From sequence record OR670491.1: 64,000 nucleotides of DNA; one strand, written 5' to 3'. A program made the translations under genes and the position numbers. Below, piece by piece: positions 4,969 to 63,238 of this stretch. A model generated the notes under the pieces. The model was not told the DNA's origin and did not search any database. It saw only the letters and a list, made by a program, of their open reading frames with translations. The first letter of the stretch is position 1; each line of letters opens with the position of its first letter.

Positions 4969-5100
4969 ATGGCTAAAAATGTAAACAACTTCGTTCAGAA
5001 ACACATGAATGAGTTTAACAAACCTCAAACCCATGTGGATCGCAAAAAAGCGATGAAGAATGGAAAAACAAAACACAAGTCGAGATATATTCTCGACTAA
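4969..5100 (+). CDS. small basic protein (not in ORF track)
   Basis: GGAG RBS; translates as MAKNVNNFVQKHMNEFNKPQTHVDRKKAMKNGKTKHKSRYILD; resembles small basic proteins of T4-like phages. Confidence 0.65.
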   Translation: MAKNVNNFVQKHMNEFNKPQTHVDRKKAMKNGKTKHKSRYILD

Positions 5101-5119: not shown

Positions 5120-5953
5120 ATGAAAGAATTTGATTACAAAAGTAAGTCAGTACTGGAATACATTGAATTACTAAATTCTAAAAATATTCCATTCGATGAT
5201 ACCAAGCTCCTTGGAAATGGAGATGAAAATTCATATAGTACTGAAAACTATGTAATCATTATTTCAAATGCAGCACCAGATATTGACATTACAGTACATA
5301 AGAAAAATAATGCCGCAGTGTTTATGTATACTCAAGATAGTAAATCAGAGTACTTACATTTCAGGGATATGAATTACTACAAAGAGAATGGTGAATTTAT
5401 ATTAAAATACAATATACTAAAGAATATCGAATTAAAAAAAGCACGATACTTTGATGGTGCTTATGACGTTAAAAGTTCAGATAAGCTTTGTATATTCACC
5501 ATGCATAAAAATATAGAAAAAGACAATGGATGGACTGAATTTGAAACTAAGTTCGATGAACAGAAAGTTTCTAATTTGTCAATACAAGAACGTTATGAAG
5601 GTTCAGATGTAGTGTGCAGTGCTGCTTACTTTCGTGCATTTGATAACACAACGAAACGTATGCAAATGCAAAACATTGACATTACGTTCAATGAAGGGTA
5701 TAGTACTGTTACTATTTCTTCAGGATATCGAAACAAGTTTACATTTGAGGTAGCAGTTCCAGACGGGTCAATTCTACACATATTTGACCCTGAATATATG
5801 TTCCAAGTTGAATTAACACTTGACACAGAGCAGTATGATAAATTACAATTTATTAGAAATTCAATCCAAGAAAAATTGGAATTATACCACTTACTAGGTG
5901 GAAAGAATCACAAAGCAACAATAGCATTACAAAATATCAAAAGTAAAAGGTAG
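5120..5953 (+). CDS. hypothetical protein, FQxS-motif family
   Basis: ATG at 5120 after GGAG; DPEYMFQVEL. Confidence 0.7.
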   Translation: MKEFDYKSKSVLEYIELLNSKNIPFDDTKLLGNGDENSYSTENYVIIISNAAPDIDITVHKKNNAAVFMYTQDSKSEYLHFRDMNYYKENGEFILKYNILKNIELKKARYFDGAYDVKSSDKLCIFTMHKNIEKDNGWTEFETKFDEQKVSNLSIQERYEGSDVVCSAAYFRAFDNTTKRMQMQNIDITFNEGYSTVTISSGYRNKFTFEVAVPDGSILHIFDPEYMFQVELTLDTEQYDKLQFIRNSIQEKLELYHLLGGKNHKATIALQNIKSKR

Positions 5954-9844: not shown

Positions 9845-10380
9845 AAGAAGCTTGTGTAGTAACATTCGGGAGAGTTAACCCGATACATAAAGGACATGGA
9901 TTAGTGTTTGAAAAGGCACAATCCCTACAAGAACAGTACGATGCGGACTTAAAGATCTTCCTAAGTACCAGTACTGATAATGTTAAAAACCCCTTACCAC
10001 CTGAATTGAAAATGTATTACACAGAGGGATTCTATCCTAATGTGCAAGAAAACATTTGCATTGAGGACAATTTATTTGATATAATGAGAGAGTTAGATGG
10101 GAAGTACATGGATGTGTTGTTCATCTGTGGCTCTGACAGGATTAACTCTTTCCAAAAAACTCTTGACAGCTACAATGGTAAGCTGTATAATTTCTGTAAT
10201 ATTAAGGCAATCCAAGCAGGTATTGACCGTAATGTTAGTAAGTACAGTTCAACACAAATGCGTTCCTTTGCTAAGAATGATGACTTCGAAAGCTTCAGTT
10301 CATTTTTACCAGGGAATGATATCGACTTAAAACAAAAACTCTTTGAAGATGTAGTAAAATACATGAGGAAAGAATTATGA
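9841..10380 (+). CDS. cytidyltransferase-like (HIGH-superfamily) nucleotidyltransferase
   Basis: VVTFGRVNPIHKGH, ICGSDR, SSTQMR motifs. Confidence 0.8.
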   Translation: MKEACVVTFGRVNPIHKGHGLVFEKAQSLQEQYDADLKIFLSTSTDNVKNPLPPELKMYYTEGFYPNVQENICIEDNLFDIMRELDGKYMDVLFICGSDRINSFQKTLDSYNGKLYNFCNIKAIQAGIDRNVSKYSSTQMRSFAKNDDFESFSSFLPGNDIDLKQKLFEDVVKYMRKEL

Positions 10381-20234: not shown

Positions 20235-20548
20235 CAGAAGAAGATTTAAAGTATCTTCTGTACGTAGAAAAATCTACCATATTAATTTCGTCGGTTTGTG
20301 AAGAGTTTGACGATACCAGATGGAAAGGATGTGTGCCAACATACATCTTCGACACTATGGAAATATTGGAAAATAAGTTCTATAATAAATTAGTATATGA
20401 AAAGGAATATCCTAAAGTCAAACTTTATATTAAAGAATGCTTTTTCGCTGGACGCAGTGGTTTTATGTTTGATACAGGACGAAACGAAAAAGAAAAGTAC
20501 ACTTTTACTAGTGTTTATCTTGATGAGATTTTGTTAGCAAAAGATTGA
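20222..20548 (+). CDS. small hypothetical protein
   Basis: GGAG RBS; EEDLKYLL. Confidence 0.6.
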   Translation: MSNLTEEDLKYLLYVEKSTILISSVCEEFDDTRWKGCVPTYIFDTMEILENKFYNKLVYEKEYPKVKLYIKECFFAGRSGFMFDTGRNEKEKYTFTSVYLDEILLAKD

Positions 20549-20573
20549 CATTGAACTGGAATTGAACTATAAT
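20545..20573 (+). promoter_or_regulatory. perfect sigma70 consensus promoter
   Basis: TTGACA-17-TATAAT. Confidence 0.7.
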
Positions 20574-51472: not shown

Positions 51473-54199
51473 ATGTCATCACAAAGAATTATTGGTAACG
51501 CCAGTATATTAGGCAACTTGGCAATTGCTGGAAAAAATGCAATGCGTACTTTTAATGGAGTCTCACCAGACTCCAATACTGGTATTGTCGATTACCCAAT
51601 ATACAAACGTTCAGAAGTACAGAAAATTCTTGATATGATGCCTATTTCGCGTATAGGGGAGATGGACTATCTCCCTTTGAACGTAAATGGTTCATATGAA
51701 GGTGCAACTTCAAACTCAGCTACATATCGTATTCAGCCAACTATCATTGAAGATGATGGTACTGGTGTAGTAATACGTGCAGGCACAAACGGAAGTAAAA
51801 ATGGTTACTATTACTCGTTTATACGAGATTTAAGAAACATTACTTCTTTTACTCAGGATATGGTTATATCAACTACAACTGAATATAAACCATCTATTCT
51901 AAGTACTGGTGAAAATATTATTCGTTTCATCGGCACAAATGGTTATGAACTTTTAGTTTCATATACCTCCGGCTCTAATTATGTTTTCACATTAACAAAC
52001 GGTACATTCAACGAAGTATCACATATTCATGCTAAGTTAGCTGAATCAAGATTCGGTACTGACAAACCATTATATGCTCATGTGGTTGGTTCGAATATTT
52101 TTGTTTGGTGCAAAGACACCACGGTAGCAAACGGTGGATTAGCATATACATTGTATACAGTTTCCAGAAGTAATATAGTTGATGGTACTATGACTTCTTT
52201 TGCTAAAGTGACTGGTTTTTCTGGTCAAACAGTAAGGAATACAAACTATAGTGCATCAAATAATATTAGAGTTTTTGACCGTTACTGGTCTACAACTACT
52301 GGTACTGATTCACTATATGATATTGTTAGTCCAGTGAACAGTGTTGAATATATTGATTATAATGATTATAATATCCAAGCAAATGCCAGTACTGACAACT
52401 CTAAAATACGAGTTACTTTATACATAACTCCACGTTTCAAGACTCCATTAGCAATTTCAACTGTTCAGCCAACTGGTATTAGTTTTGTTTATAATATTAG
52501 TTCAAAGGTTATGACATTAGATGGGTCAGCAAGAGCACCAGCAACAGCAGCATACACTAATAATAATTTTGTTGTTACCAACCCATTCTCAATTTCAATG
52601 AGTAACTTTACTGGTTCAACTAATAGTTCATCTTCATTAGGTGACTGCGGTTCAATCTGTCAAACATCAGATGGTCTTGTTTTTACATCAAAATCAAGAT
52701 GGATATCAGATGAAACCTATGGTTTACAACTATATAAAGTACAAGGTACTCCATACGATAGTTGGGTCGCTAGTACTCGTAAGTCCAGTGATTTAACTAA
52801 CGTAAATGTTAAACCAACATATGGTTCTGCTGTAGGGGAAAACTTACTTGGTGTTAGATTTATTGATAAAAGAAAAGTACTTCTTGCATGTTCCAGTACT
52901 AGCGATGGTGTTACTTATGGCTATGACAGTACTGTATCCTCTGATATAGGAGACTCTCCAGTATACACATATAATAGTGTTGTAACTGGGTCTACAATTG
53001 AAGGTTTTGCTCCTGAAGCTGGACGTGAATATCATGGAAATAGTTATGATTATACCGCTATGGTTTCTTTGATTGCGGCTGATGGAACAGTAAAAACATA
53101 TGGTTCTTCATTTATAGAAGGAATAGCCAAAGATGCAAATGGATTATTAGATCCAGATACAATGACATTCTCAGGAAAATACACAATGAGTAATACTGCT
53201 TTGATGAATCTCAAACAATCGATCATTGATAGTGCAGATATTACTGGGACCAGTACTTCTAGGATTTGTTTTTATTATGTACCTGATAATACATTCTCAA
53301 GATCTATGGCAGTTGTTTGTACATACAATCCAACTAACAACCAAGGTTATGCTATTTTTGCAGAAGTAAATGCTGTTCTAAGTGGTTCAGAAATTACAAG
53401 TGCATCAGTATATACAACCAGATATGAAGTACTTGGTAGTATATCAGGAATCCAAAGTAATGCTCTAATGAAGCGTTGTACTGGATTAACAGTTGCAAAA
53501 TACTCTGGATTCAATTATCTTGGTATTGATACTATCCATCAGTTCACAGTTCCTGGTGATGTTAGTCAGAAAATGATGATAGCTAAAGTTAAAAATGGTG
53601 ATATCAGTACTAACCGTTATTTTACAACCTATCATGTTAGCAACGGTTCAGCTTTCCAGAGTGGTGCTATCCCTGGTGGTGGATTCGGTTATTATAACTT
53701 CAGTAATTCCGACTTACAGACAAAAGCAGTTCTTTCAGTATTCGGGACAACAGAAGCCCAGATGGATGGTTTGATTGCTGGTACTGGTGCAGTACTGAAC
53801 AATTATGTTGTAGTTTCTCAAGATGTAGCTGCTGGTTTCAACGTGTACTTCACCCGTGAAGTTCCGGTGTTCCTTGCTGGTATGTTCGACCGTCTGGTAG
53901 TTCAGACACTTGACCTAACAACCATCAAGAGTAATCCAGCTAACAGTACTTTCTACATTTACATAGAAATGAACCGAAGTACTGGTAAGGCTTCTTATGT
54001 TGTGAGTACTATACTCCTTGATGAAACGTTGACACGAGCCTTCATAGGAACTATAATTACTGGTGCTACTAACATATCATCAATTGAAACAGAAAAAGTG
54101 ACAAGGTTCTTGACCTATCGCCCAAGTACAACAAAACGTGGTTCTGCAATCCCGTCTAGTACTGGCGTACCGTCAGGCACTGGTACACGTTGGAAATAA
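51473..54199 (+). CDS. large beta-rich virion/tail protein (paralog B)
   Basis: 908 aa; MMPISRIG, IEDDGT.V.IRAGTNGS and SQDVAAGF.VYFT.E.PV shared with 48157. Confidence 0.7.
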   Translation: MSSQRIIGNASILGNLAIAGKNAMRTFNGVSPDSNTGIVDYPIYKRSEVQKILDMMPISRIGEMDYLPLNVNGSYEGATSNSATYRIQPTIIEDDGTGVVIRAGTNGSKNGYYYSFIRDLRNITSFTQDMVISTTTEYKPSILSTGENIIRFIGTNGYELLVSYTSGSNYVFTLTNGTFNEVSHIHAKLAESRFGTDKPLYAHVVGSNIFVWCKDTTVANGGLAYTLYTVSRSNIVDGTMTSFAKVTGFSGQTVRNTNYSASNNIRVFDRYWSTTTGTDSLYDIVSPVNSVEYIDYNDYNIQANASTDNSKIRVTLYITPRFKTPLAISTVQPTGISFVYNISSKVMTLDGSARAPATAAYTNNNFVVTNPFSISMSNFTGSTNSSSSLGDCGSICQTSDGLVFTSKSRWISDETYGLQLYKVQGTPYDSWVASTRKSSDLTNVNVKPTYGSAVGENLLGVRFIDKRKVLLACSSTSDGVTYGYDSTVSSDIGDSPVYTYNSVVTGSTIEGFAPEAGREYHGNSYDYTAMVSLIAADGTVKTYGSSFIEGIAKDANGLLDPDTMTFSGKYTMSNTALMNLKQSIIDSADITGTSTSRICFYYVPDNTFSRSMAVVCTYNPTNNQGYAIFAEVNAVLSGSEITSASVYTTRYEVLGSISGIQSNALMKRCTGLTVAKYSGFNYLGIDTIHQFTVPGDVSQKMMIAKVKNGDISTNRYFTTYHVSNGSAFQSGAIPGGGFGYYNFSNSDLQTKAVLSVFGTTEAQMDGLIAGTGAVLNNYVVVSQDVAAGFNVYFTREVPVFLAGMFDRLVVQTLDLTTIKSNPANSTFYIYIEMNRSTGKASYVVSTILLDETLTRAFIGTIITGATNISSIETEKVTRFLTYRPSTTKRGSAIPSSTGVPSGTGTRWK

Positions 54200-58614: not shown

Positions 58615-61410
58615 ATGTTAAACAATAATCCTAATATTGATAATATCGTACAGTTAATTTATGGTCATCACAAATTTCTTGAAAGAAACACTGGTGATAC
58701 AATTGACCCTACTGTACAGCACTATGTAATTAATGAACAAGGCGTATTGGCTAACAACCGTCATTTCATCAATCACTCCGCAATGGAAGGACAACCAAAT
58801 GGTGACGGCACAACAGAAGGTCAAAGTCTCCTTATTCTTGGATACATTTATGCGTATTTGGCAACCAACGACAATTTATTTCTTGAAAAAGCTAAATGGT
58901 ACTGGGATGCATATCATCAGTACTTCTATAATGGTAGAGAATTTCCTGATCCACCAACTCCGTTACAATGCAACTGGATTGTGAACGCAAAGGAACCAAT
59001 TCTAGCAAACTGGCCTTTGGCTGACGACGGATGGCCTACTCACGGTGGATTTAAAGGTATCGAGTTTCCTTTCGTTAATGGTCAATGCAAAGTGCCTCAT
59101 GGTGCTCCATATTATGGTGAGTATATTGATAAAGTTACGTTTGCATTCAAAGGTGCATTGGCATGGAATCAAATAAATGCATCAGTAAAAGCAATATTAC
59201 CTGATGGAAGTACAGATTGGGATAACCCTGGTGAGCAGTATGATGTTGATTGGGTTATAGATTTCTTAGGTCGTAAAGTTGATTGGGATGGAAACATTCT
59301 GGCTGAAGGTTTTGATGAATCTGAAAAAGGTACTGTCCAATTAAAAGACACTACACTCAATGGAACTTATAAACTAAACTTTGCCAACAGACAACCTATT
59401 GAATTTGGTGGTGTTTATATTGAACGTAACCAAATGCAACATAACCGTCCATTACACGTTCCAATTAGTTTAGAGTTTGCTGATAACGCGAGTGATGCCG
59501 AATTATGGTTCAGTGATGCTTCTTACTTGTTATATAAAATAACCAAAGAAAGAAAACATTATCTTGGCTGGAAATGTTCACTACTTACATGTTATGCATA
59601 CGGAGATATTGACGCAAAAGATAAATTCTTCCGTCAAAGTACAATTGTTACTACCCCATTTACTGATGGTATTTCATATGAATATTTCTATCCAAGTACT
59701 GCAATTGCTGAATTTGGAAGAAACTCACTTGGATATATTACAATTAAGCAACAAGAAAGTGCACAAAGTACACTTGAGCAACAGGCTATTTGGTTCAGAT
59801 TGAATACATCGTCCAGCTTAGTTGTTGATTACGGTGGTGTTTGTGTTGATGGGAAACCTTTATCATTTAAACCAGTACTGGAATTATCGAAAACAAAGAA
59901 TGAGCATGATACTGTTCGCTATCGCTGCGGTCTTCCAGAAAGTACCAATAGAGATATCAAACATTCAATAACACCGCTGAGTGCATTTGTTCGTGAGAAA
60001 AAAGATGATGGTTCCCCTTACATTATTGCAGATAGTAGAATTGTAGTTCCGTATGGTTCAGGTACATCAGAAATGTTATATAGTACTGATATTTTAGAAA
60101 CAAGACGAGACACTATTAACCAATTAGTTTGTGGTGAAGATGATGGTGCAGTTATTGGTTTCTGGTTACTTGATTCCGGTAAATCTGAAGTGAAAGCTTT
60201 TACTTATCGTTCATATGAAGATGATTATAACATCCGTATCGTTGATGATAATGGCTGGCGTTGGTGGTGGATGATTCCTGCAACCCACGGTGAATGGAGT
60301 ACAATAGAATTAACTGCTGATACTTTACATTTATCTGGATGGCAACCAAATCACCCTGATGACCCTGATCCTGCTGCTCCGGTATATACAGAATTAGAAG
60401 ATATTACAATTCTCCCTGATACGACTCCAGTAAATGGAGTTGCAGTACTGGATTGGTATTGTTTAAACGAGCTACCAGAACTGTACAACAACGAAGATGG
60501 CGATGACTACACTATGGCATTCGCCATTACAATTGCTGGTGAGAGTGCTTATACGGCTCTTTTAGGGGATTGTGTAATCAAAGATTATTTGCTAAACTCA
60601 TTACATTATACACCAGGAACTATCCCGTTCTCTAACATTACCGACCCATATGCTAGTCAGTACTCTGGATGGCGTGGATTACCATATCCTGGGTATCAGT
60701 ATCCTGTAATCTACTGTTTCGAAGATGTACCAGTTGACCATACACGCCTTGGTAATATGGTTGATTTCATGAAAGATTCTCAAGAGTGGTTTACTTCACA
60801 ATTCGGTACTGTTGGTCCTTGTGCTCAAGCATATGTATGGAACCGTTGGGATAACCTGAAATATGGGGAACCCGATACGTTTACTATGTTACACTGGGGT
60901 GATCAAGCGTGGAGTGGTTATGAACCTCGTGCATTCTTTGGTGCTTGTAGAGCATGGCAAGAACTACATGACCGTGGTGAGGAAGTTCCACAAACAATCA
61001 TTGATTTCTGTGAGAACTGGATTCATTTCTTGATTAAGTTTCAGAAAGACAATGATGGTCGCTCCCCGACGATTTTCAACAAAGATGGTACAGTTGAAGG
61101 TCCAGATTGGGACTTCACCGGACATATGTGTGGATTGTGGTTGGCAGGTGCATGTTGTGCTGGTCTTGCTGGATGTACCATTGAGGGATTAGATGAACTC
61201 GCTGATGGTTTAGTACTGGAACTTCAGAACAACTATGTGGTAGTTTCTCCTGGCTCTGTTATGAACGGTTCATGGAGTCCTGGTGTTCGTGAAGGTACTG
61301 ATAATGGTATGTTCTTCGGATTCTGGGCTGGTGAGATTATGCGTGGTTTAGGATTGTACTCAATGTACCGCCTTAACACACCTAACCGTTATGCTGCATT
61401 TCCTGGTTGA
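58615..61410 (+). CDS. GH8-like (alpha/alpha)6 glycoside hydrolase with internal CBM-like insertion; probable virion depolymerase
   Basis: TTEGQS and NASDAELW match the GH8 TSEGQS and ASDAD catalytic motifs; Trp-rich beta insert. Confidence 0.65.
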   Translation: MLNNNPNIDNIVQLIYGHHKFLERNTGDTIDPTVQHYVINEQGVLANNRHFINHSAMEGQPNGDGTTEGQSLLILGYIYAYLATNDNLFLEKAKWYWDAYHQYFYNGREFPDPPTPLQCNWIVNAKEPILANWPLADDGWPTHGGFKGIEFPFVNGQCKVPHGAPYYGEYIDKVTFAFKGALAWNQINASVKAILPDGSTDWDNPGEQYDVDWVIDFLGRKVDWDGNILAEGFDESEKGTVQLKDTTLNGTYKLNFANRQPIEFGGVYIERNQMQHNRPLHVPISLEFADNASDAELWFSDASYLLYKITKERKHYLGWKCSLLTCYAYGDIDAKDKFFRQSTIVTTPFTDGISYEYFYPSTAIAEFGRNSLGYITIKQQESAQSTLEQQAIWFRLNTSSSLVVDYGGVCVDGKPLSFKPVLELSKTKNEHDTVRYRCGLPESTNRDIKHSITPLSAFVREKKDDGSPYIIADSRIVVPYGSGTSEMLYSTDILETRRDTINQLVCGEDDGAVIGFWLLDSGKSEVKAFTYRSYEDDYNIRIVDDNGWRWWWMIPATHGEWSTIELTADTLHLSGWQPNHPDDPDPAAPVYTELEDITILPDTTPVNGVAVLDWYCLNELPELYNNEDGDDYTMAFAITIAGESAYTALLGDCVIKDYLLNSLHYTPGTIPFSNITDPYASQYSGWRGLPYPGYQYPVIYCFEDVPVDHTRLGNMVDFMKDSQEWFTSQFGTVGPCAQAYVWNRWDNLKYGEPDTFTMLHWGDQAWSGYEPRAFFGACRAWQELHDRGEEVPQTIIDFCENWIHFLIKFQKDNDGRSPTIFNKDGTVEGPDWDFTGHMCGLWLAGACCAGLAGCTIEGLDELADGLVLELQNNYVVVSPGSVMNGSWSPGVREGTDNGMFFGFWAGEIMRGLGLYSMYRLNTPNRYAAFPG

Positions 61411-61434
61411 CAACAAAATTTAAACTGATATAAT
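61407..61434 (+). promoter_or_regulatory. early promoter overlapping a terminator
   Basis: TTGACA-16-TATAAT with TGn. Confidence 0.7.
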
Positions 61435-61465
61435 GAGAACTTCAATATGAGGTTCTCATTTTTTT
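61432..61465 (+). terminator. intrinsic terminator
   Basis: aatgagaac/gttctcatt + T-run. Confidence 0.75.
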
Positions 61466-61477
61466 AAGGTGAATATA

Positions 61478-61873
61478 ATGCTAAATCAAAATATCATGAA
61501 AGCTCTGAAAATCATCCAACACGAAGTTAGTCTGGTACAGAAAAGTACTGATCGTTATTGCCTGATGGAAGATATCCAAGAGCAAATTGAACTTATTCGT
61601 AAAAATAAGGCTGTTGTTTCTCAATCTGAATCGTTAGAGGCAATTGCTGATATCATTTCATCCAAAACTGGAACAGCACGTGAAAATATTCTCGGTGCAC
61701 GCGACCTCGAACAAAGCGAGATTGAACATTTATATAAGTTCGATAACTGCGATTGGATTGAGATGATTATGGAACTAGAAGATAAGTTCGATTTAGAGAT
61801 CCCTACACACTTTGAAAGCAGAGACACTACACTTGGTTCTTTAGTTAATTTTATTGATCTAAAATATAATTAA
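61478..61873 (+). CDS. acyl-carrier-protein-like protein lacking the Ppant serine
   Basis: FDNCDWIEMIMELEDKFDLEIP aligns to [22 protein letters not shown] of E. coli AcpP; ~50-aa N-terminal extension. Confidence 0.75.
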   Translation: MLNQNIMKALKIIQHEVSLVQKSTDRYCLMEDIQEQIELIRKNKAVVSQSESLEAIADIISSKTGTARENILGARDLEQSEIEHLYKFDNCDWIEMIMELEDKFDLEIPTHFESRDTTLGSLVNFIDLKYN

Positions 61874-61882
61874 TAATGTACT

Positions 61883-61889
61883 CTAAATA
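61883..61889 (+). promoter_or_regulatory. late promoter candidate
   Basis: CTAAATA ~28 nt before the spanin start. Confidence 0.45.
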
Positions 61890-61916
61890 ATATCATCAAC
61901 TATAGGAGATATTATT

Positions 61917-62291
61917 ATGAGTATGCTAGAACTATTGCTTAAACATGTAATTATACCATATTGGAAACCATTATTAGTTGTTTTAGTAATGTCTGGATGT
62001 GTGTATGGTGGATGGGAAGCAAACAATTACTACACCGGATACAAAGAAAGCATTGATTTGAAAATTGAAAAACAAGTCAATGCTGCTTTGGATCAGATGC
62101 AACAAGAATCGGCTAAAAGTTATATTGAAACTAAGCAAATCATGCAAGATAATGCTAAGGTCATTGAAACTAAAATACCTTACATCGTTGAACGTGAAGT
62201 TTACTACAATGTATGTTTAGACCAAGATGGTGTGAATGTTCTTAAAGAACTAAAAGAAAATTCACGTAAAGCGAGGAATCAGTACAAATGA
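61917..62291 (+). CDS. inner-membrane spanin (Rz-like)
   Basis: N-terminal TM, coiled region, VY..VCLD.DG; overlaps a lipoprotein gene. Confidence 0.75.
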   Translation: MSMLELLLKHVIIPYWKPLLVVLVMSGCVYGGWEANNYYTGYKESIDLKIEKQVNAALDQMQQESAKSYIETKQIMQDNAKVIETKIPYIVEREVYYNVCLDQDGVNVLKELKENSRKARNQYK

Positions 62292-62593
62292 AATATATTC
62301 TGATTTTATCATGTGCACTATTATTTGCTGGATGTGCTCAAAAAGTACAATTACCTGCTGACCGAGTAGTAAAGCAAGAGATTCTACTTGAGCGTTGTTC
62401 GTTTGATACCCCACTCCCTGAACAAATTGTTGTTGACAAACACGGCAATTCAGGATACTCTGGTAAAGAAGTTTTGGATGTACTACGTAAATGGGATTCA
62501 ATCTACAATGATTGTGCTCTAAAGCACGATGCATTAATTGACTTGATTCGTAAACTACAAGGTGAAAACATCACGGTCATTATTAAAGAGTAA
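62288..62593 (+). CDS. outer-membrane spanin lipoprotein (Rz1-like)
   Basis: lipobox LFAGC; LERC..D.PLP; YNDCA.KHDAL. Confidence 0.8.
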   Translation: MKYILILSCALLFAGCAQKVQLPADRVVKQEILLERCSFDTPLPEQIVVDKHGNSGYSGKEVLDVLRKWDSIYNDCALKHDALIDLIRKLQGENITVIIKE

Positions 62594-62603
62594 GGACATT
62601 TGA

Positions 62604-63200
62604 ATGAAGAAATATCAGGTTTACTATAAAACTAATTTAGATTTAATTCATAAACTATCTACTACTGGAGAAGGTACTAAGCGTTATACTTTCAATAAGG
62701 TAACATTCAGATACTTCCCACAAAAAGTACTGACATTTGTTAAAAATTGCAAATGCATTGCTTGTGGTATCGAAGGAACCGAAGTTCGTATTGAACGTTC
62801 TCACAGTAACGATCCAATTTATGGTAAACCTCATCTCAATGTCTATGCAGTGTGTGGATTGTATGAAGTACTCATGACCGTAGATCATAACCATCTGGCT
62901 TCTAAAGGCGGGTCTGATTTAGAAAGTAATTTTAATACCATGTGCGTTCACTGTAATCAAATGCGTTCAAATAAAACTGAAACAGTTCAAGAATTTCTTG
63001 AAAATGTTAAAGGTCGAAATCTATTAGATGAACACATGAAACTTTTTTTCGATAAACAGGAAAAGAAAAAGAACCCTTCTAATAGAAAGCCAGAAACAAT
63101 CGCTTATGAAAAATGGTGGAATGAAGAACATTTATGGCATTACCGTGATTATCTTCGTAAATTGAAAAAAGAAGAAAAAGCTTTACTTAAACAAAAGTAG
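62604..63200 (+). CDS. HNH endonuclease-like protein
   Basis: CIAC, TVDH..LASKGGSD...N...MCVHCN. Confidence 0.8.
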   Translation: MKKYQVYYKTNLDLIHKLSTTGEGTKRYTFNKVTFRYFPQKVLTFVKNCKCIACGIEGTEVRIERSHSNDPIYGKPHLNVYAVCGLYEVLMTVDHNHLASKGGSDLESNFNTMCVHCNQMRSNKTETVQEFLENVKGRNLLDEHMKLFFDKQEKKKNPSNRKPETIAYEKWWNEEHLWHYRDYLRKLKKEEKALLKQK

Positions 63201-63210: not shown

Positions 63211-63238
63211 GGGACTTGAGAAATCAAGTCCTTTTTTT
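63211..63238 (+). terminator. intrinsic terminator
   Basis: gggacttga gaaa tcaagtcct + T-run. Confidence 0.8.

Follow-up and report, generated by a model that had tools for sequence, protein, structure and literature searches.

Positions 61,478 to 61,873 of the 64,000-nucleotide stretch of OR670491.1 analysed here (the window) hold a gene of Escherichia phage vB_EcoM_JNE01 whose product resembles an acyl carrier protein (ACP) and has an asparagine in place of the serine to which ACPs attach phosphopantetheine. JNE01 is a jumbo phage of the genus Asteriusvirus with a genome of 355,583 bp, and its host is E. coli O157:H7. Positions 60900-62600 match the JNE01 record with 100% identity, and the numbering of the window is that of the record. 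We refer to the protein as the look-alike. Its open reading frame (ORF) runs from an ATG at 61478, with a ribosome-binding site (AAGGTG) 8 nt 5' of it, to a stop codon at 61871-61873, and the start, MLN, is common to all close orthologs. The gene and its parts are listed below; pLDDT denotes the predicted local distance difference test score of the AlphaFold2 model.

61478..61873, + strand: coding sequence of the ACP look-alike, 131 aa plus stop; WOL22691.1, annotated 'hypothetical protein'
61478..61612, + strand: N-terminal extension, residues 1-45; two predicted helices (pLDDT 80-94), conserved in the family alignments
61613..61870, + strand: carrier-protein (ACP) fold domain, residues 46-131, from profile, AlphaFold2 and structure matches; extra short helix pair in loop I
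61742..61756, + strand: D89-N90-C91-D92-W93 motif; Asn codon AAC at 61745-61747 in place of the phosphopantetheine serine

The carrier fold of the look-alike

An earlier note on this DNA, the original prediction, had proposed that the C-terminal part of the protein is ACP-like, and profile, model and structure comparisons all bear this out. In PHROGs, residues 2-126 of the look-alike are spanned by phrog_18343, a family listed with function unknown (E 9.5e-20), and the protein is also matched by phrog_5934, 'acyl carrier protein' (E 3e-9). Its match to the Pfam phosphopantetheine-binding domain PP-binding (PF00550) is marginal (E 0.025; 15.3 bits, below the cut-off of 20.8). The AcpP models of NCBIfam match it with E-values of 1e-7 to 2e-5, all far under their curated cut-offs (29.9 against 70.45 for TIGR00517, 31.7 against 66 for NF002150). 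A profile of nine orthologs matched solved ACP chains of B. subtilis and E. coli (E 3e-7 to 7e-6), with the DSLD of these ACPs aligned onto the phage DNCD motif. Identity to solved ACPs is 26-32% over about 77 residues.

The AlphaFold2 model, built with a 30-sequence alignment, had a pLDDT of 91.1 and a predicted template modelling score (pTM) of 0.63. Its helices lie at residues 4-19 and 23-45, forming an N-terminal hairpin, and at 51-64, 68-72 and 79-86 (short and extra), 90-104, 110-113 and 119-130. Helix II thus begins at residue 90, which we therefore take as the counterpart of Ser36 of E. coli ACP, the serine of the DSL motif that opens helix II in that protein (PMC12469350). Foldseek searches with the model against the PDB had exclusively ACPs as their top 50 matches (TM-scores 0.62-0.79, and 0.72-0.79 for the best of them, normalised on the target). 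VIA-align, which is independent of Foldseek, also matched carrier proteins throughout, over residues 46-131 and with Z-scores up to 10.3, and the ACP-like fold can be assigned to this part of the chain. The VIA-align results contained no structural match over the hairpin (residues 1-45). This extension, put at about 50 residues in the original prediction, comes to about 45, with two predicted helices, and is conserved across the family, where the alignments show residues E16, S23, R26 and Y27 to be kept. The carrier domain is acidic (isoelectric point 4.25), and the look-alike has neither a signal peptide nor a membrane segment. A search of the ESM Atlas with the look-alike gave no usable lead.

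Compared with the ACPs of type II fatty-acid synthesis (E. coli AcpP, B. subtilis ACP; PF00550, TIGR00517), the look-alike has the same four-helix carrier fold, and the helix II motif D-x-L-D-x-x-E-x-x-M-x-x-E-x-x-F, followed by E-I-P, is common to both groups. The JNE01 protein differs in the absence of the attachment serine, in a tryptophan at the mouth of the acyl pocket, in a 6-residue insertion with an extra helix in loop I and in the 45-aa N-terminal hairpin. Further, it scores under all curated cut-offs, and the phage that encodes it has neither a phosphopantetheinyl transferase (PPTase) nor a member of three ACP-using enzyme families (see below). Since it lacks two defining properties of AcpP, the serine and the curated score, we do not file it as an ACP but as an ACP-derived fold.

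The attachment site and its loss

The motif D89-N90-C91-D92, with the AAC codon at 61745-61747, is present as originally claimed, and N90 aligns with the phosphopantetheine serine, which was fully conserved in all ACPs compared in a previous study (PMC12469350). With Asn90 replacing this serine, loading at the canonical site is excluded on sequence grounds. AAC is one base away from AGC, a serine codon, and Asn90 could in principle reflect a sequencing error, or a mutation peculiar to the strain, in an otherwise normal serine-bearing ACP. We regard the chance of this as negligible. Phage Turkey5, an independent isolate whose DNA is 98.8% identical here, encodes an identical protein. FDNCDW occurs in 13/13 distinct sequences of the 90%-identity cluster, found on more than 16 contigs, and the Asn codon is unchanged in contigs from three independent metagenome studies (chicken-gut, food and wastewater). 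The nearest different relative (89% identity, on a Logan contig that also carries spanins) has AGA, hence arginine and not serine, at site 90. Where the family does have serine, its codon is TCA, not AGC; elsewhere, site 90 is encoded by TGG (Trp) or ACA (Thr). On these grounds we ruled out an error or strain mutation. A single-sequence, word-based protein search retrieved only the protein's own cluster and the one 89% relative.

A broader picture came from a family alignment of 30 rows. In these, site 90 is occupied by eight residue types (S 17, D 5, W 2, T 2, N 1, R 1, E 1, K 1), and the columns around it are the most conserved of the protein: D89 in 30/30 rows, L91 in 26/30, D92 in 29/30 and E95 in 27/30. 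M98 (28/30), E101 (29/30), F104 (27/30) and E107 (26/30) are also conserved. Of the conservation that the original prediction had considered for Asn and Cys, the Asn is fixed in JNE01-like sequences and neither residue is conserved across the family.

A maximum-likelihood tree, computed without column 90 and without column 93, splits the family into two halves of 15 rows each (starred support 95/82). In one half, serine occupies site 90 in 14/15 rows and position 93 is varied; the phages of the genera Mimasvirus and Eneladusvirus, which keep DSLD, belong here. The other half comprises JNE01 and all Asteriusvirus; here, tryptophan occupies position 93 in 14/15 rows and site 90 is N, R, W, S, T, E, D or K. 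Trp93 was gained once on the tree, and site 90 underwent at least 10 changes, nearly all of them in the Trp93 half. Within lineages, the residue at site 90 is fixed: Asn in JNE01-like phages, Trp in 121Q-, fEgEco12- and TH47-like phages and Ser in A4-like phages; UE-S1-like phages have Ser with one Thr, and the PBECO4 ortholog has Trp. The distribution of residues over the tree indicates that site 90 has lost its constraint at depth and is not hypervariable, and that the change from DSL to DNC is no one-off, the whole clade having lost the constraint on the serine. In E. coli ACP, the entrance to the cavity includes the N-terminal part of helix II (PMC12469350). Located in the first turn of this helix, at the cavity entrance, Trp93 would be expected to obstruct the acyl pocket.

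The serine-bearing ACPs of Rak2-like phages (GAP32_159, CBB_163, BF, fHe-Yen9-04 g153, pEa_SNUABM) are true homologs of the look-alike, having the same length, a hairpin with the R-Y motif and the same locus. They differ in that they keep DSLD, lack Trp93 and are presumably loadable by host AcpS; JNE01 falls into their sister clade.

We found no PPTase (PF01648) in eight Rak2-like genomes (JNE01, 121Q, A4, fEgEco12, GAP32, CBB, fHe-Yen9-04 and a Klebsiella phage), nor a second PP-binding gene in JNE01, 121Q, A4 and fEgEco12. AMP-ligases (PF00501), PlsB/C-type acyltransferases (PF01553) and ketosynthases (PF00109) gave no match above threshold in JNE01, GAP32, CBB, fHe-Yen9-04 and the Klebsiella phage; the same enzyme-family searches were positive in control genomes. 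Given the absence of a PPTase from the phage genomes searched, the serine-bearing homologs must depend on host AcpS, and with the three enzyme families also missing from those searched for them, whatever contact this protein family has with the ACP network is contact with proteins of the host.

The original prediction had suggested Cys91 as an alternative acylation site. Cysteine is present at this position only in the JNE01 lineage (2/30 rows), and leucine in 26/30; since Cys91 aligns with the leucine of the DSL motif, we read it as a Leu-to-Cys swap rather than as a new attachment site and rejected it as a site of loading. More generally, the protein might still be a carrier in which another residue (Cys91 in JNE01, Thr in some relatives) is acylated or phosphopantetheinylated and a lipid-metabolic role is kept. 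Cys91 does adjoin the lost serine, site 90 is Ser or Thr in some relatives, and the acidic residues by which AcpS recognises ACP are kept: in E. coli ACP, the residues that pair ionically with AcpS, and that modification in vivo requires, are D35, E41 and E47/E48 (bioRxiv 10.1101/2025.01.28.635281), and their phage counterparts are the near-invariant D89, E95 and E101. The acidic recognition helix II as a whole is retained, with D89, D92, E95 and E101 as the equivalents of D35, D38, E41 and E47. However, Cys91 is confined to one lineage and occupies a leucine position taken as buried, close relatives have W, R, D, E or K at site 90, none of which is loadable, the tryptophan at the pocket mouth goes along with the loss of the serine, and the phage genomes searched contain no gene of the three ACP-using families. 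We know of no precedent for a direct thioester on a cysteine of the carrier fold. A continued role as a carrier is therefore scarcely credible to us.

Another way to account for an unconstrained key residue would be that the gene is a drifting remnant without a function of its own, persisting as a spacer or as a promoter-carrying segment in front of the spanin genes. It is indeed the most diverged gene of its neighbourhood: identity between the JNE01 look-alike and other Asteriusvirus orthologs is 34-38%, making it the fastest-evolving gene locally, whereas the tail protein, spanins, HNH gene and following ORF reach 53-87%. Two Salmonella phage records have C-terminally altered copies, which would also fit decay. 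Yet the pairwise ratio of non-synonymous to synonymous substitution rates (dN/dS) is 0.12-0.33 where dS is unsaturated (0.28 between JNE01 and the 89% relative), pointing to a protein that is kept by purifying selection. Of 36 phage records, 34 have an intact reading frame, as do all metagenome clusters; even between deeply diverged members, helix II and the N-terminal motifs do not vary, and the AlphaFold2 model is confident. We consider a drifting remnant very improbable, and rejected the reading as a pseudogene in view of the dN/dS values and the intact frames.

The two exceptions are Salmonella phages SD-1_S14 (L007:1501-1935) and SD-6_S16 (L010:1501-1881), whose orthologs are of the PBECO4 type up to helix III. 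The SD-1_S14 ortholog then continues into unrelated sequence, and in that of SD-6_S16, 13 residues close to the C-terminus are missing. The two records are shorter than the others (310-320 kb), and the differences reflect either an assembly error or real C-terminal damage.

From the above we firmly conclude that the look-alike is a carrier-fold protein that cannot be phosphopantetheinylated at the canonical site and is selected for something other than acyl carriage, and, equally firmly, that it descends from a serine-bearing phage ACP.

Locus, transcription and linkage to the spanins

The look-alike gene lies between a tail protein gene and the two spanin genes, with signals for transcription on either side of the block:

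58615-61410: 931-aa tail protein (phrog_2871), upstream neighbour of the look-alike
61407..61434, + strand: sigma-70 consensus promoter; -35 TTGACA at 61407-61412, 16-nt spacer ending in TG (extended -10), -10 TATAAT at 61429-61434
61432..61467, + strand: terminator-like hairpin of 13 pairs plus T-run, for the upstream tail gene; overlaps the -10 box
61917..62291, + strand: i-spanin (Rz-like, N-terminal transmembrane helix); phrog_1152 (E 2e-25) and synteny
62288..62593, + strand: o-spanin (Rz1-like lipoprotein); signal peptide ends in the lipobox Cys; overlaps the i-spanin stop
62604..63200, + strand: HNH endonuclease; PF01844 and phrog_23285
63211..63232, + strand: terminator-like hairpin plus T-run; would end the unit started at 61407

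That the gene has its own promoter, as originally proposed, is supported by the site at 61407-61434, which matches TTGACA-16-TATAAT in 12/12 positions. Perfect sigma-70 sites number four in the 64-kb window, where 0.16 would be expected by chance, and are probably early promoters for the host polymerase. The three others, all on the + strand, are of the form TTGACA-N(17)-TATAAT and lie at 10163-10191, 20545-20573 and 54029-54057. The hairpin and T-run that overlap the promoter are kept in JNE01, the contig of P0002, A4, 121Q, PBECO4, the contig of P0017 and UE-S1, in the last of which a terminator is annotated at the same place. Promoter and hairpin are kept as a pair in 6/6 other aligned sequences that have the intergenic spacer; TH47, which has no spacer, also has no promoter.

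Transcripts of the tail gene would stop at the hairpin at 61432-61467. Transcripts from the promoter, starting about 7 nt past the -10 box, would miss the 5' arm of this hairpin and could read through into the look-alike, the spanin genes and the HNH gene, up to 63211-63232. The HNH gene is the last before the next terminator-like site and thus probably belongs to the same transcription unit. The arrangement of these signals suggests that the JNE01 look-alike is transcribed by host RNA polymerase from the 61407 promoter, probably together with the two spanin genes and the HNH gene. In a wastewater metatranscriptome (run X18), short contigs are identical to 61409-61598 and 61880-62030, one of them starting inside the -35 box; such contigs show neither transcription, strand nor start. 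A literature search found no Asteriusvirus transcriptome.

Searches with tblastn found orthologs in 36 E. coli and Salmonella jumbo-phage records, at the same locus every time. A profile search over 1.8 billion representative sequences added about 25 full-length relatives of 122-154 aa with both hairpin and carrier domain; longer matches in this search were tandem ACP repeats, not informative fusions. A scan of IMG/VR with the ortholog alignment matched only 121Q. Several relatives are annotated as 'acyl carrier protein': in Mimasvirus, those of Cronobacter phage GAP32 (GAP32_159) and Pectobacterium phage CBB (CBB_163); in Eneladusvirus, those of Serratia phage BF, the Erwinia pEa_SNUABM phages and Yersinia phage fHe-Yen9-04 (g153); further, those of Erwinia phage Kaldavass, Xanthomonas phage XbC2 and a Klebsiella phage. 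As its place is the same in every readable locus, the look-alike is a core gene of the Rak2-like jumbo phages and not an accessory moron.

Some entries in the collection differ in extent. The annotation of GAP32_159 (locus L025:5001-5417) begins at 5163 and is limited to the carrier domain of 84 aa; since the open frame begins at 5001 and encodes the conserved N-terminal hairpin, the annotated start is mis-called. A 432-aa ORF of Escherichia phage CMSTMSU (P0197, from an unverified record) shares a 90% cluster with the 138-aa look-alikes of fEgEco12 type, and the best structural match in BFVD is a 432-aa protein, probably this ORF. Given the gene order of fEgEco12-type phages, it is probably a read-through of nucleotidyltransferase and look-alike or a frameshift artefact, and we did not count it as a true fusion. 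A metagenomic protein of 276 aa (P0075) combines a weak EAD11 match (PF19964, just below cut-off) with a PP-binding domain related to the look-alike family, and may link the carrier fold to conflict systems.

The surroundings of the look-alike vary within the genus. In JNE01, 121Q, A4 and PBECO4, the tail protein sits between a block with an RlaP-type nucleotidyltransferase and the look-alike; in fEgEco12-, UE-S1- and TH47-type phages it is missing there and the nucleotidyltransferase gene abuts the look-alike ORF, which shows module shuffling within the genus. In Asteriusvirus, the HNH gene follows the o-spanin gene and precedes the next conserved one; it is missing from that place in two more distant relatives (L022 and L023), as expected for a mobile insertion.

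On its downstream side, the look-alike directly precedes a membrane-anchored i-spanin and then a lipobox o-spanin in every readable locus, down to 19-30% identity, an adjacency already remarked on for the Eneladusvirus ACP gene (PMC7760394). This raises the question of whether the protein is an accessory of the lysis machinery, acting with the spanins or another envelope or lysis factor of the phage and using the ACP fold as a small acidic adaptor. In addition to the adjacency, no terminator separates the look-alike from the spanins in JNE01, the next terminator-like site being that at 63211, and ACPs are known as subunits of membrane complexes, with MmpL5-AcpM and EmbA-EmbB-AcpM2 entries among our fold matches. 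Against such a role, the look-alike has no signal peptide or membrane segment, while nearly all of each spanin lies in the periplasm and the stub in the cytoplasm comes to some twelve residues, and no lysis system with an ACP-like protein is known. Moreover, the gene order is conserved for the whole surrounding block, so that adjacency alone is weak evidence. We therefore judge a lysis accessory to be an unlikely explanation.

The look-alike had no match to a lysis-related family in Pfam, PHROGs or NCBIfam. Its model gave a weak structural match to a 411-aa 'lysis inhibitor' of Aeromonas phage 65.2. RIIB (phrog_609, phrog_3803) was found in none of five Rak2-like genomes, a weak negative because the control genomes do not validate the two models.

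Possible mode of action and related systems

ACP is among the most connected proteins of bacteria, its clients including the enzymes of fatty-acid and lipid A synthesis, AcpS, SpoT, MukB and IscS. On balance, we favour the view that the look-alike is a cofactor-independent descendant of a phage-borne, AcpP-type ACP that acts by binding to proteins, possibly as a decoy for host ACP clients. The original prediction had put forward a decoy that could block fatty-acid or lipid A synthesis, SpoT signalling or a defence protein that depends on ACP.

The ancestor would have kept the serine of DSLD, as Mimasvirus and Eneladusvirus still do, and would have been loaded by host AcpS. In the branch leading to JNE01, helix II then gained a tryptophan in its first turn, where the acyl pocket opens, after which the serine position was free to change, to Asn in JNE01, Arg in its closest relative and Trp in 121Q and PBECO4. 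The resulting protein would be unable to carry phosphopantetheine or an acyl chain. Selection retains the fold, the acidic side of helix II (D89, D92, E95, E101, E107) and the N-terminal two-helix hairpin, and the constancy of these three suggests that the look-alike probably acts by binding. Its acidic helix might dock on a basic ACP-binding site, most likely that of a host ACP client. As the only plausible partners that recognise ACP are host proteins, the look-alike may be a non-productive competitor of host holo- or acyl-ACP, with the hairpin providing a second contact or an oligomerisation surface.

Several points weigh against a decoy. The serine is central to the interface in canonical ACP-enzyme complexes, and tight canonical docking fits poorly with a site at which W, R, D, K and N are all accepted. 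The placing of the hairpin relative to the ACP domain is uncertain in the model (pTM 0.63). The strict linkage to the spanins could mean a phage-internal role rather than a host target. The promoter is absent where the upstream gene abuts or overlaps the ORF, as in fEgEco12-type phages and more distant relatives; with no room for it there, the promoter is a feature of a lineage and early expression is not a trait of the family. The same acidic residues of helix II also form two metal-binding sites that stabilise the ACP fold (PMC12469350), so that their conservation may reflect folding rather than docking. Finally, the serine-bearing Eneladusvirus homolog is among 89 particle proteins identified by liquid chromatography with tandem mass spectrometry, in a list that also contains lysis proteins (PMC7760394). 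In phAPEC6, by comparison, mass spectrometry detected 62 virion proteins, which include the neighbours gp314c and gp315c but not the ortholog itself, gp313c. We therefore regard packaging in the virion as possible for the family at large and as unlikely for Asteriusvirus.

A different role would be that of a phage-built sensor or adaptor, linking the network of ACP and lipid synthesis in the host to the genes for envelope disruption downstream. In the serine-bearing branch, host lipid metabolism would then be reported by the loading state of the phage carrier (apo, holo or acyl), the Trp93 branch, JNE01 included, would be locked in one state, and the hairpin with its invariant Arg-Tyr would play the part that an LYR protein has for mitochondrial ACP. 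We think this improbable; if true, viruses would have put the carrier fold to a new regulatory use.

The closest parallel to a cofactor-free binding protein with this fold is the mitochondrial ACP (mACP) of Plasmodium, in which the serine is replaced by phenylalanine and which is a phosphopantetheine-independent subunit binding the LYR protein Isd11; Toxoplasma mACP copies have Cys or Gly at the site (PMC8547962). As in the phage protein, the fold has been kept under selection after the loss of the serine, and Glu is retained at +5 and +11 (E95 and E101 in the phage). The phenylalanine resembles the aromatic Trp of 121Q-type phages, whereas the Asn of JNE01 is not aromatic. The Plasmodium protein has a separate origin, in a eukaryotic organelle, and its partner is Isd11 with Nfs1, whereas no partner of LYR type is known for the phage protein. 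The likeness would thus be an analogy of mechanism and not common descent within the mACP group. In that study, serine-less ACPs were found only in apicomplexans and one chromerid (PMC8547962), and judged by features at the sequence level the phage clade would be an independent second case of a serine-less ACP fold. A literature search found no described phage ACP mimic or decoy.

If the reading as a binding protein is correct, a branch of giant enterobacterial phages keeps a non-carrying copy of ACP with its docking helix, and this would be a natural probe for an ACP-binding site that is relevant to infection. The clades with and without the serine form a pair and offer a built-in comparison for experiments. 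Should the partner be a host enzyme, the look-alike would be a ready-made scaffold for an inhibitor and also, after the mitochondria of apicomplexans, the second independent case of a carrier fold turned into a cofactor-free binding subunit.

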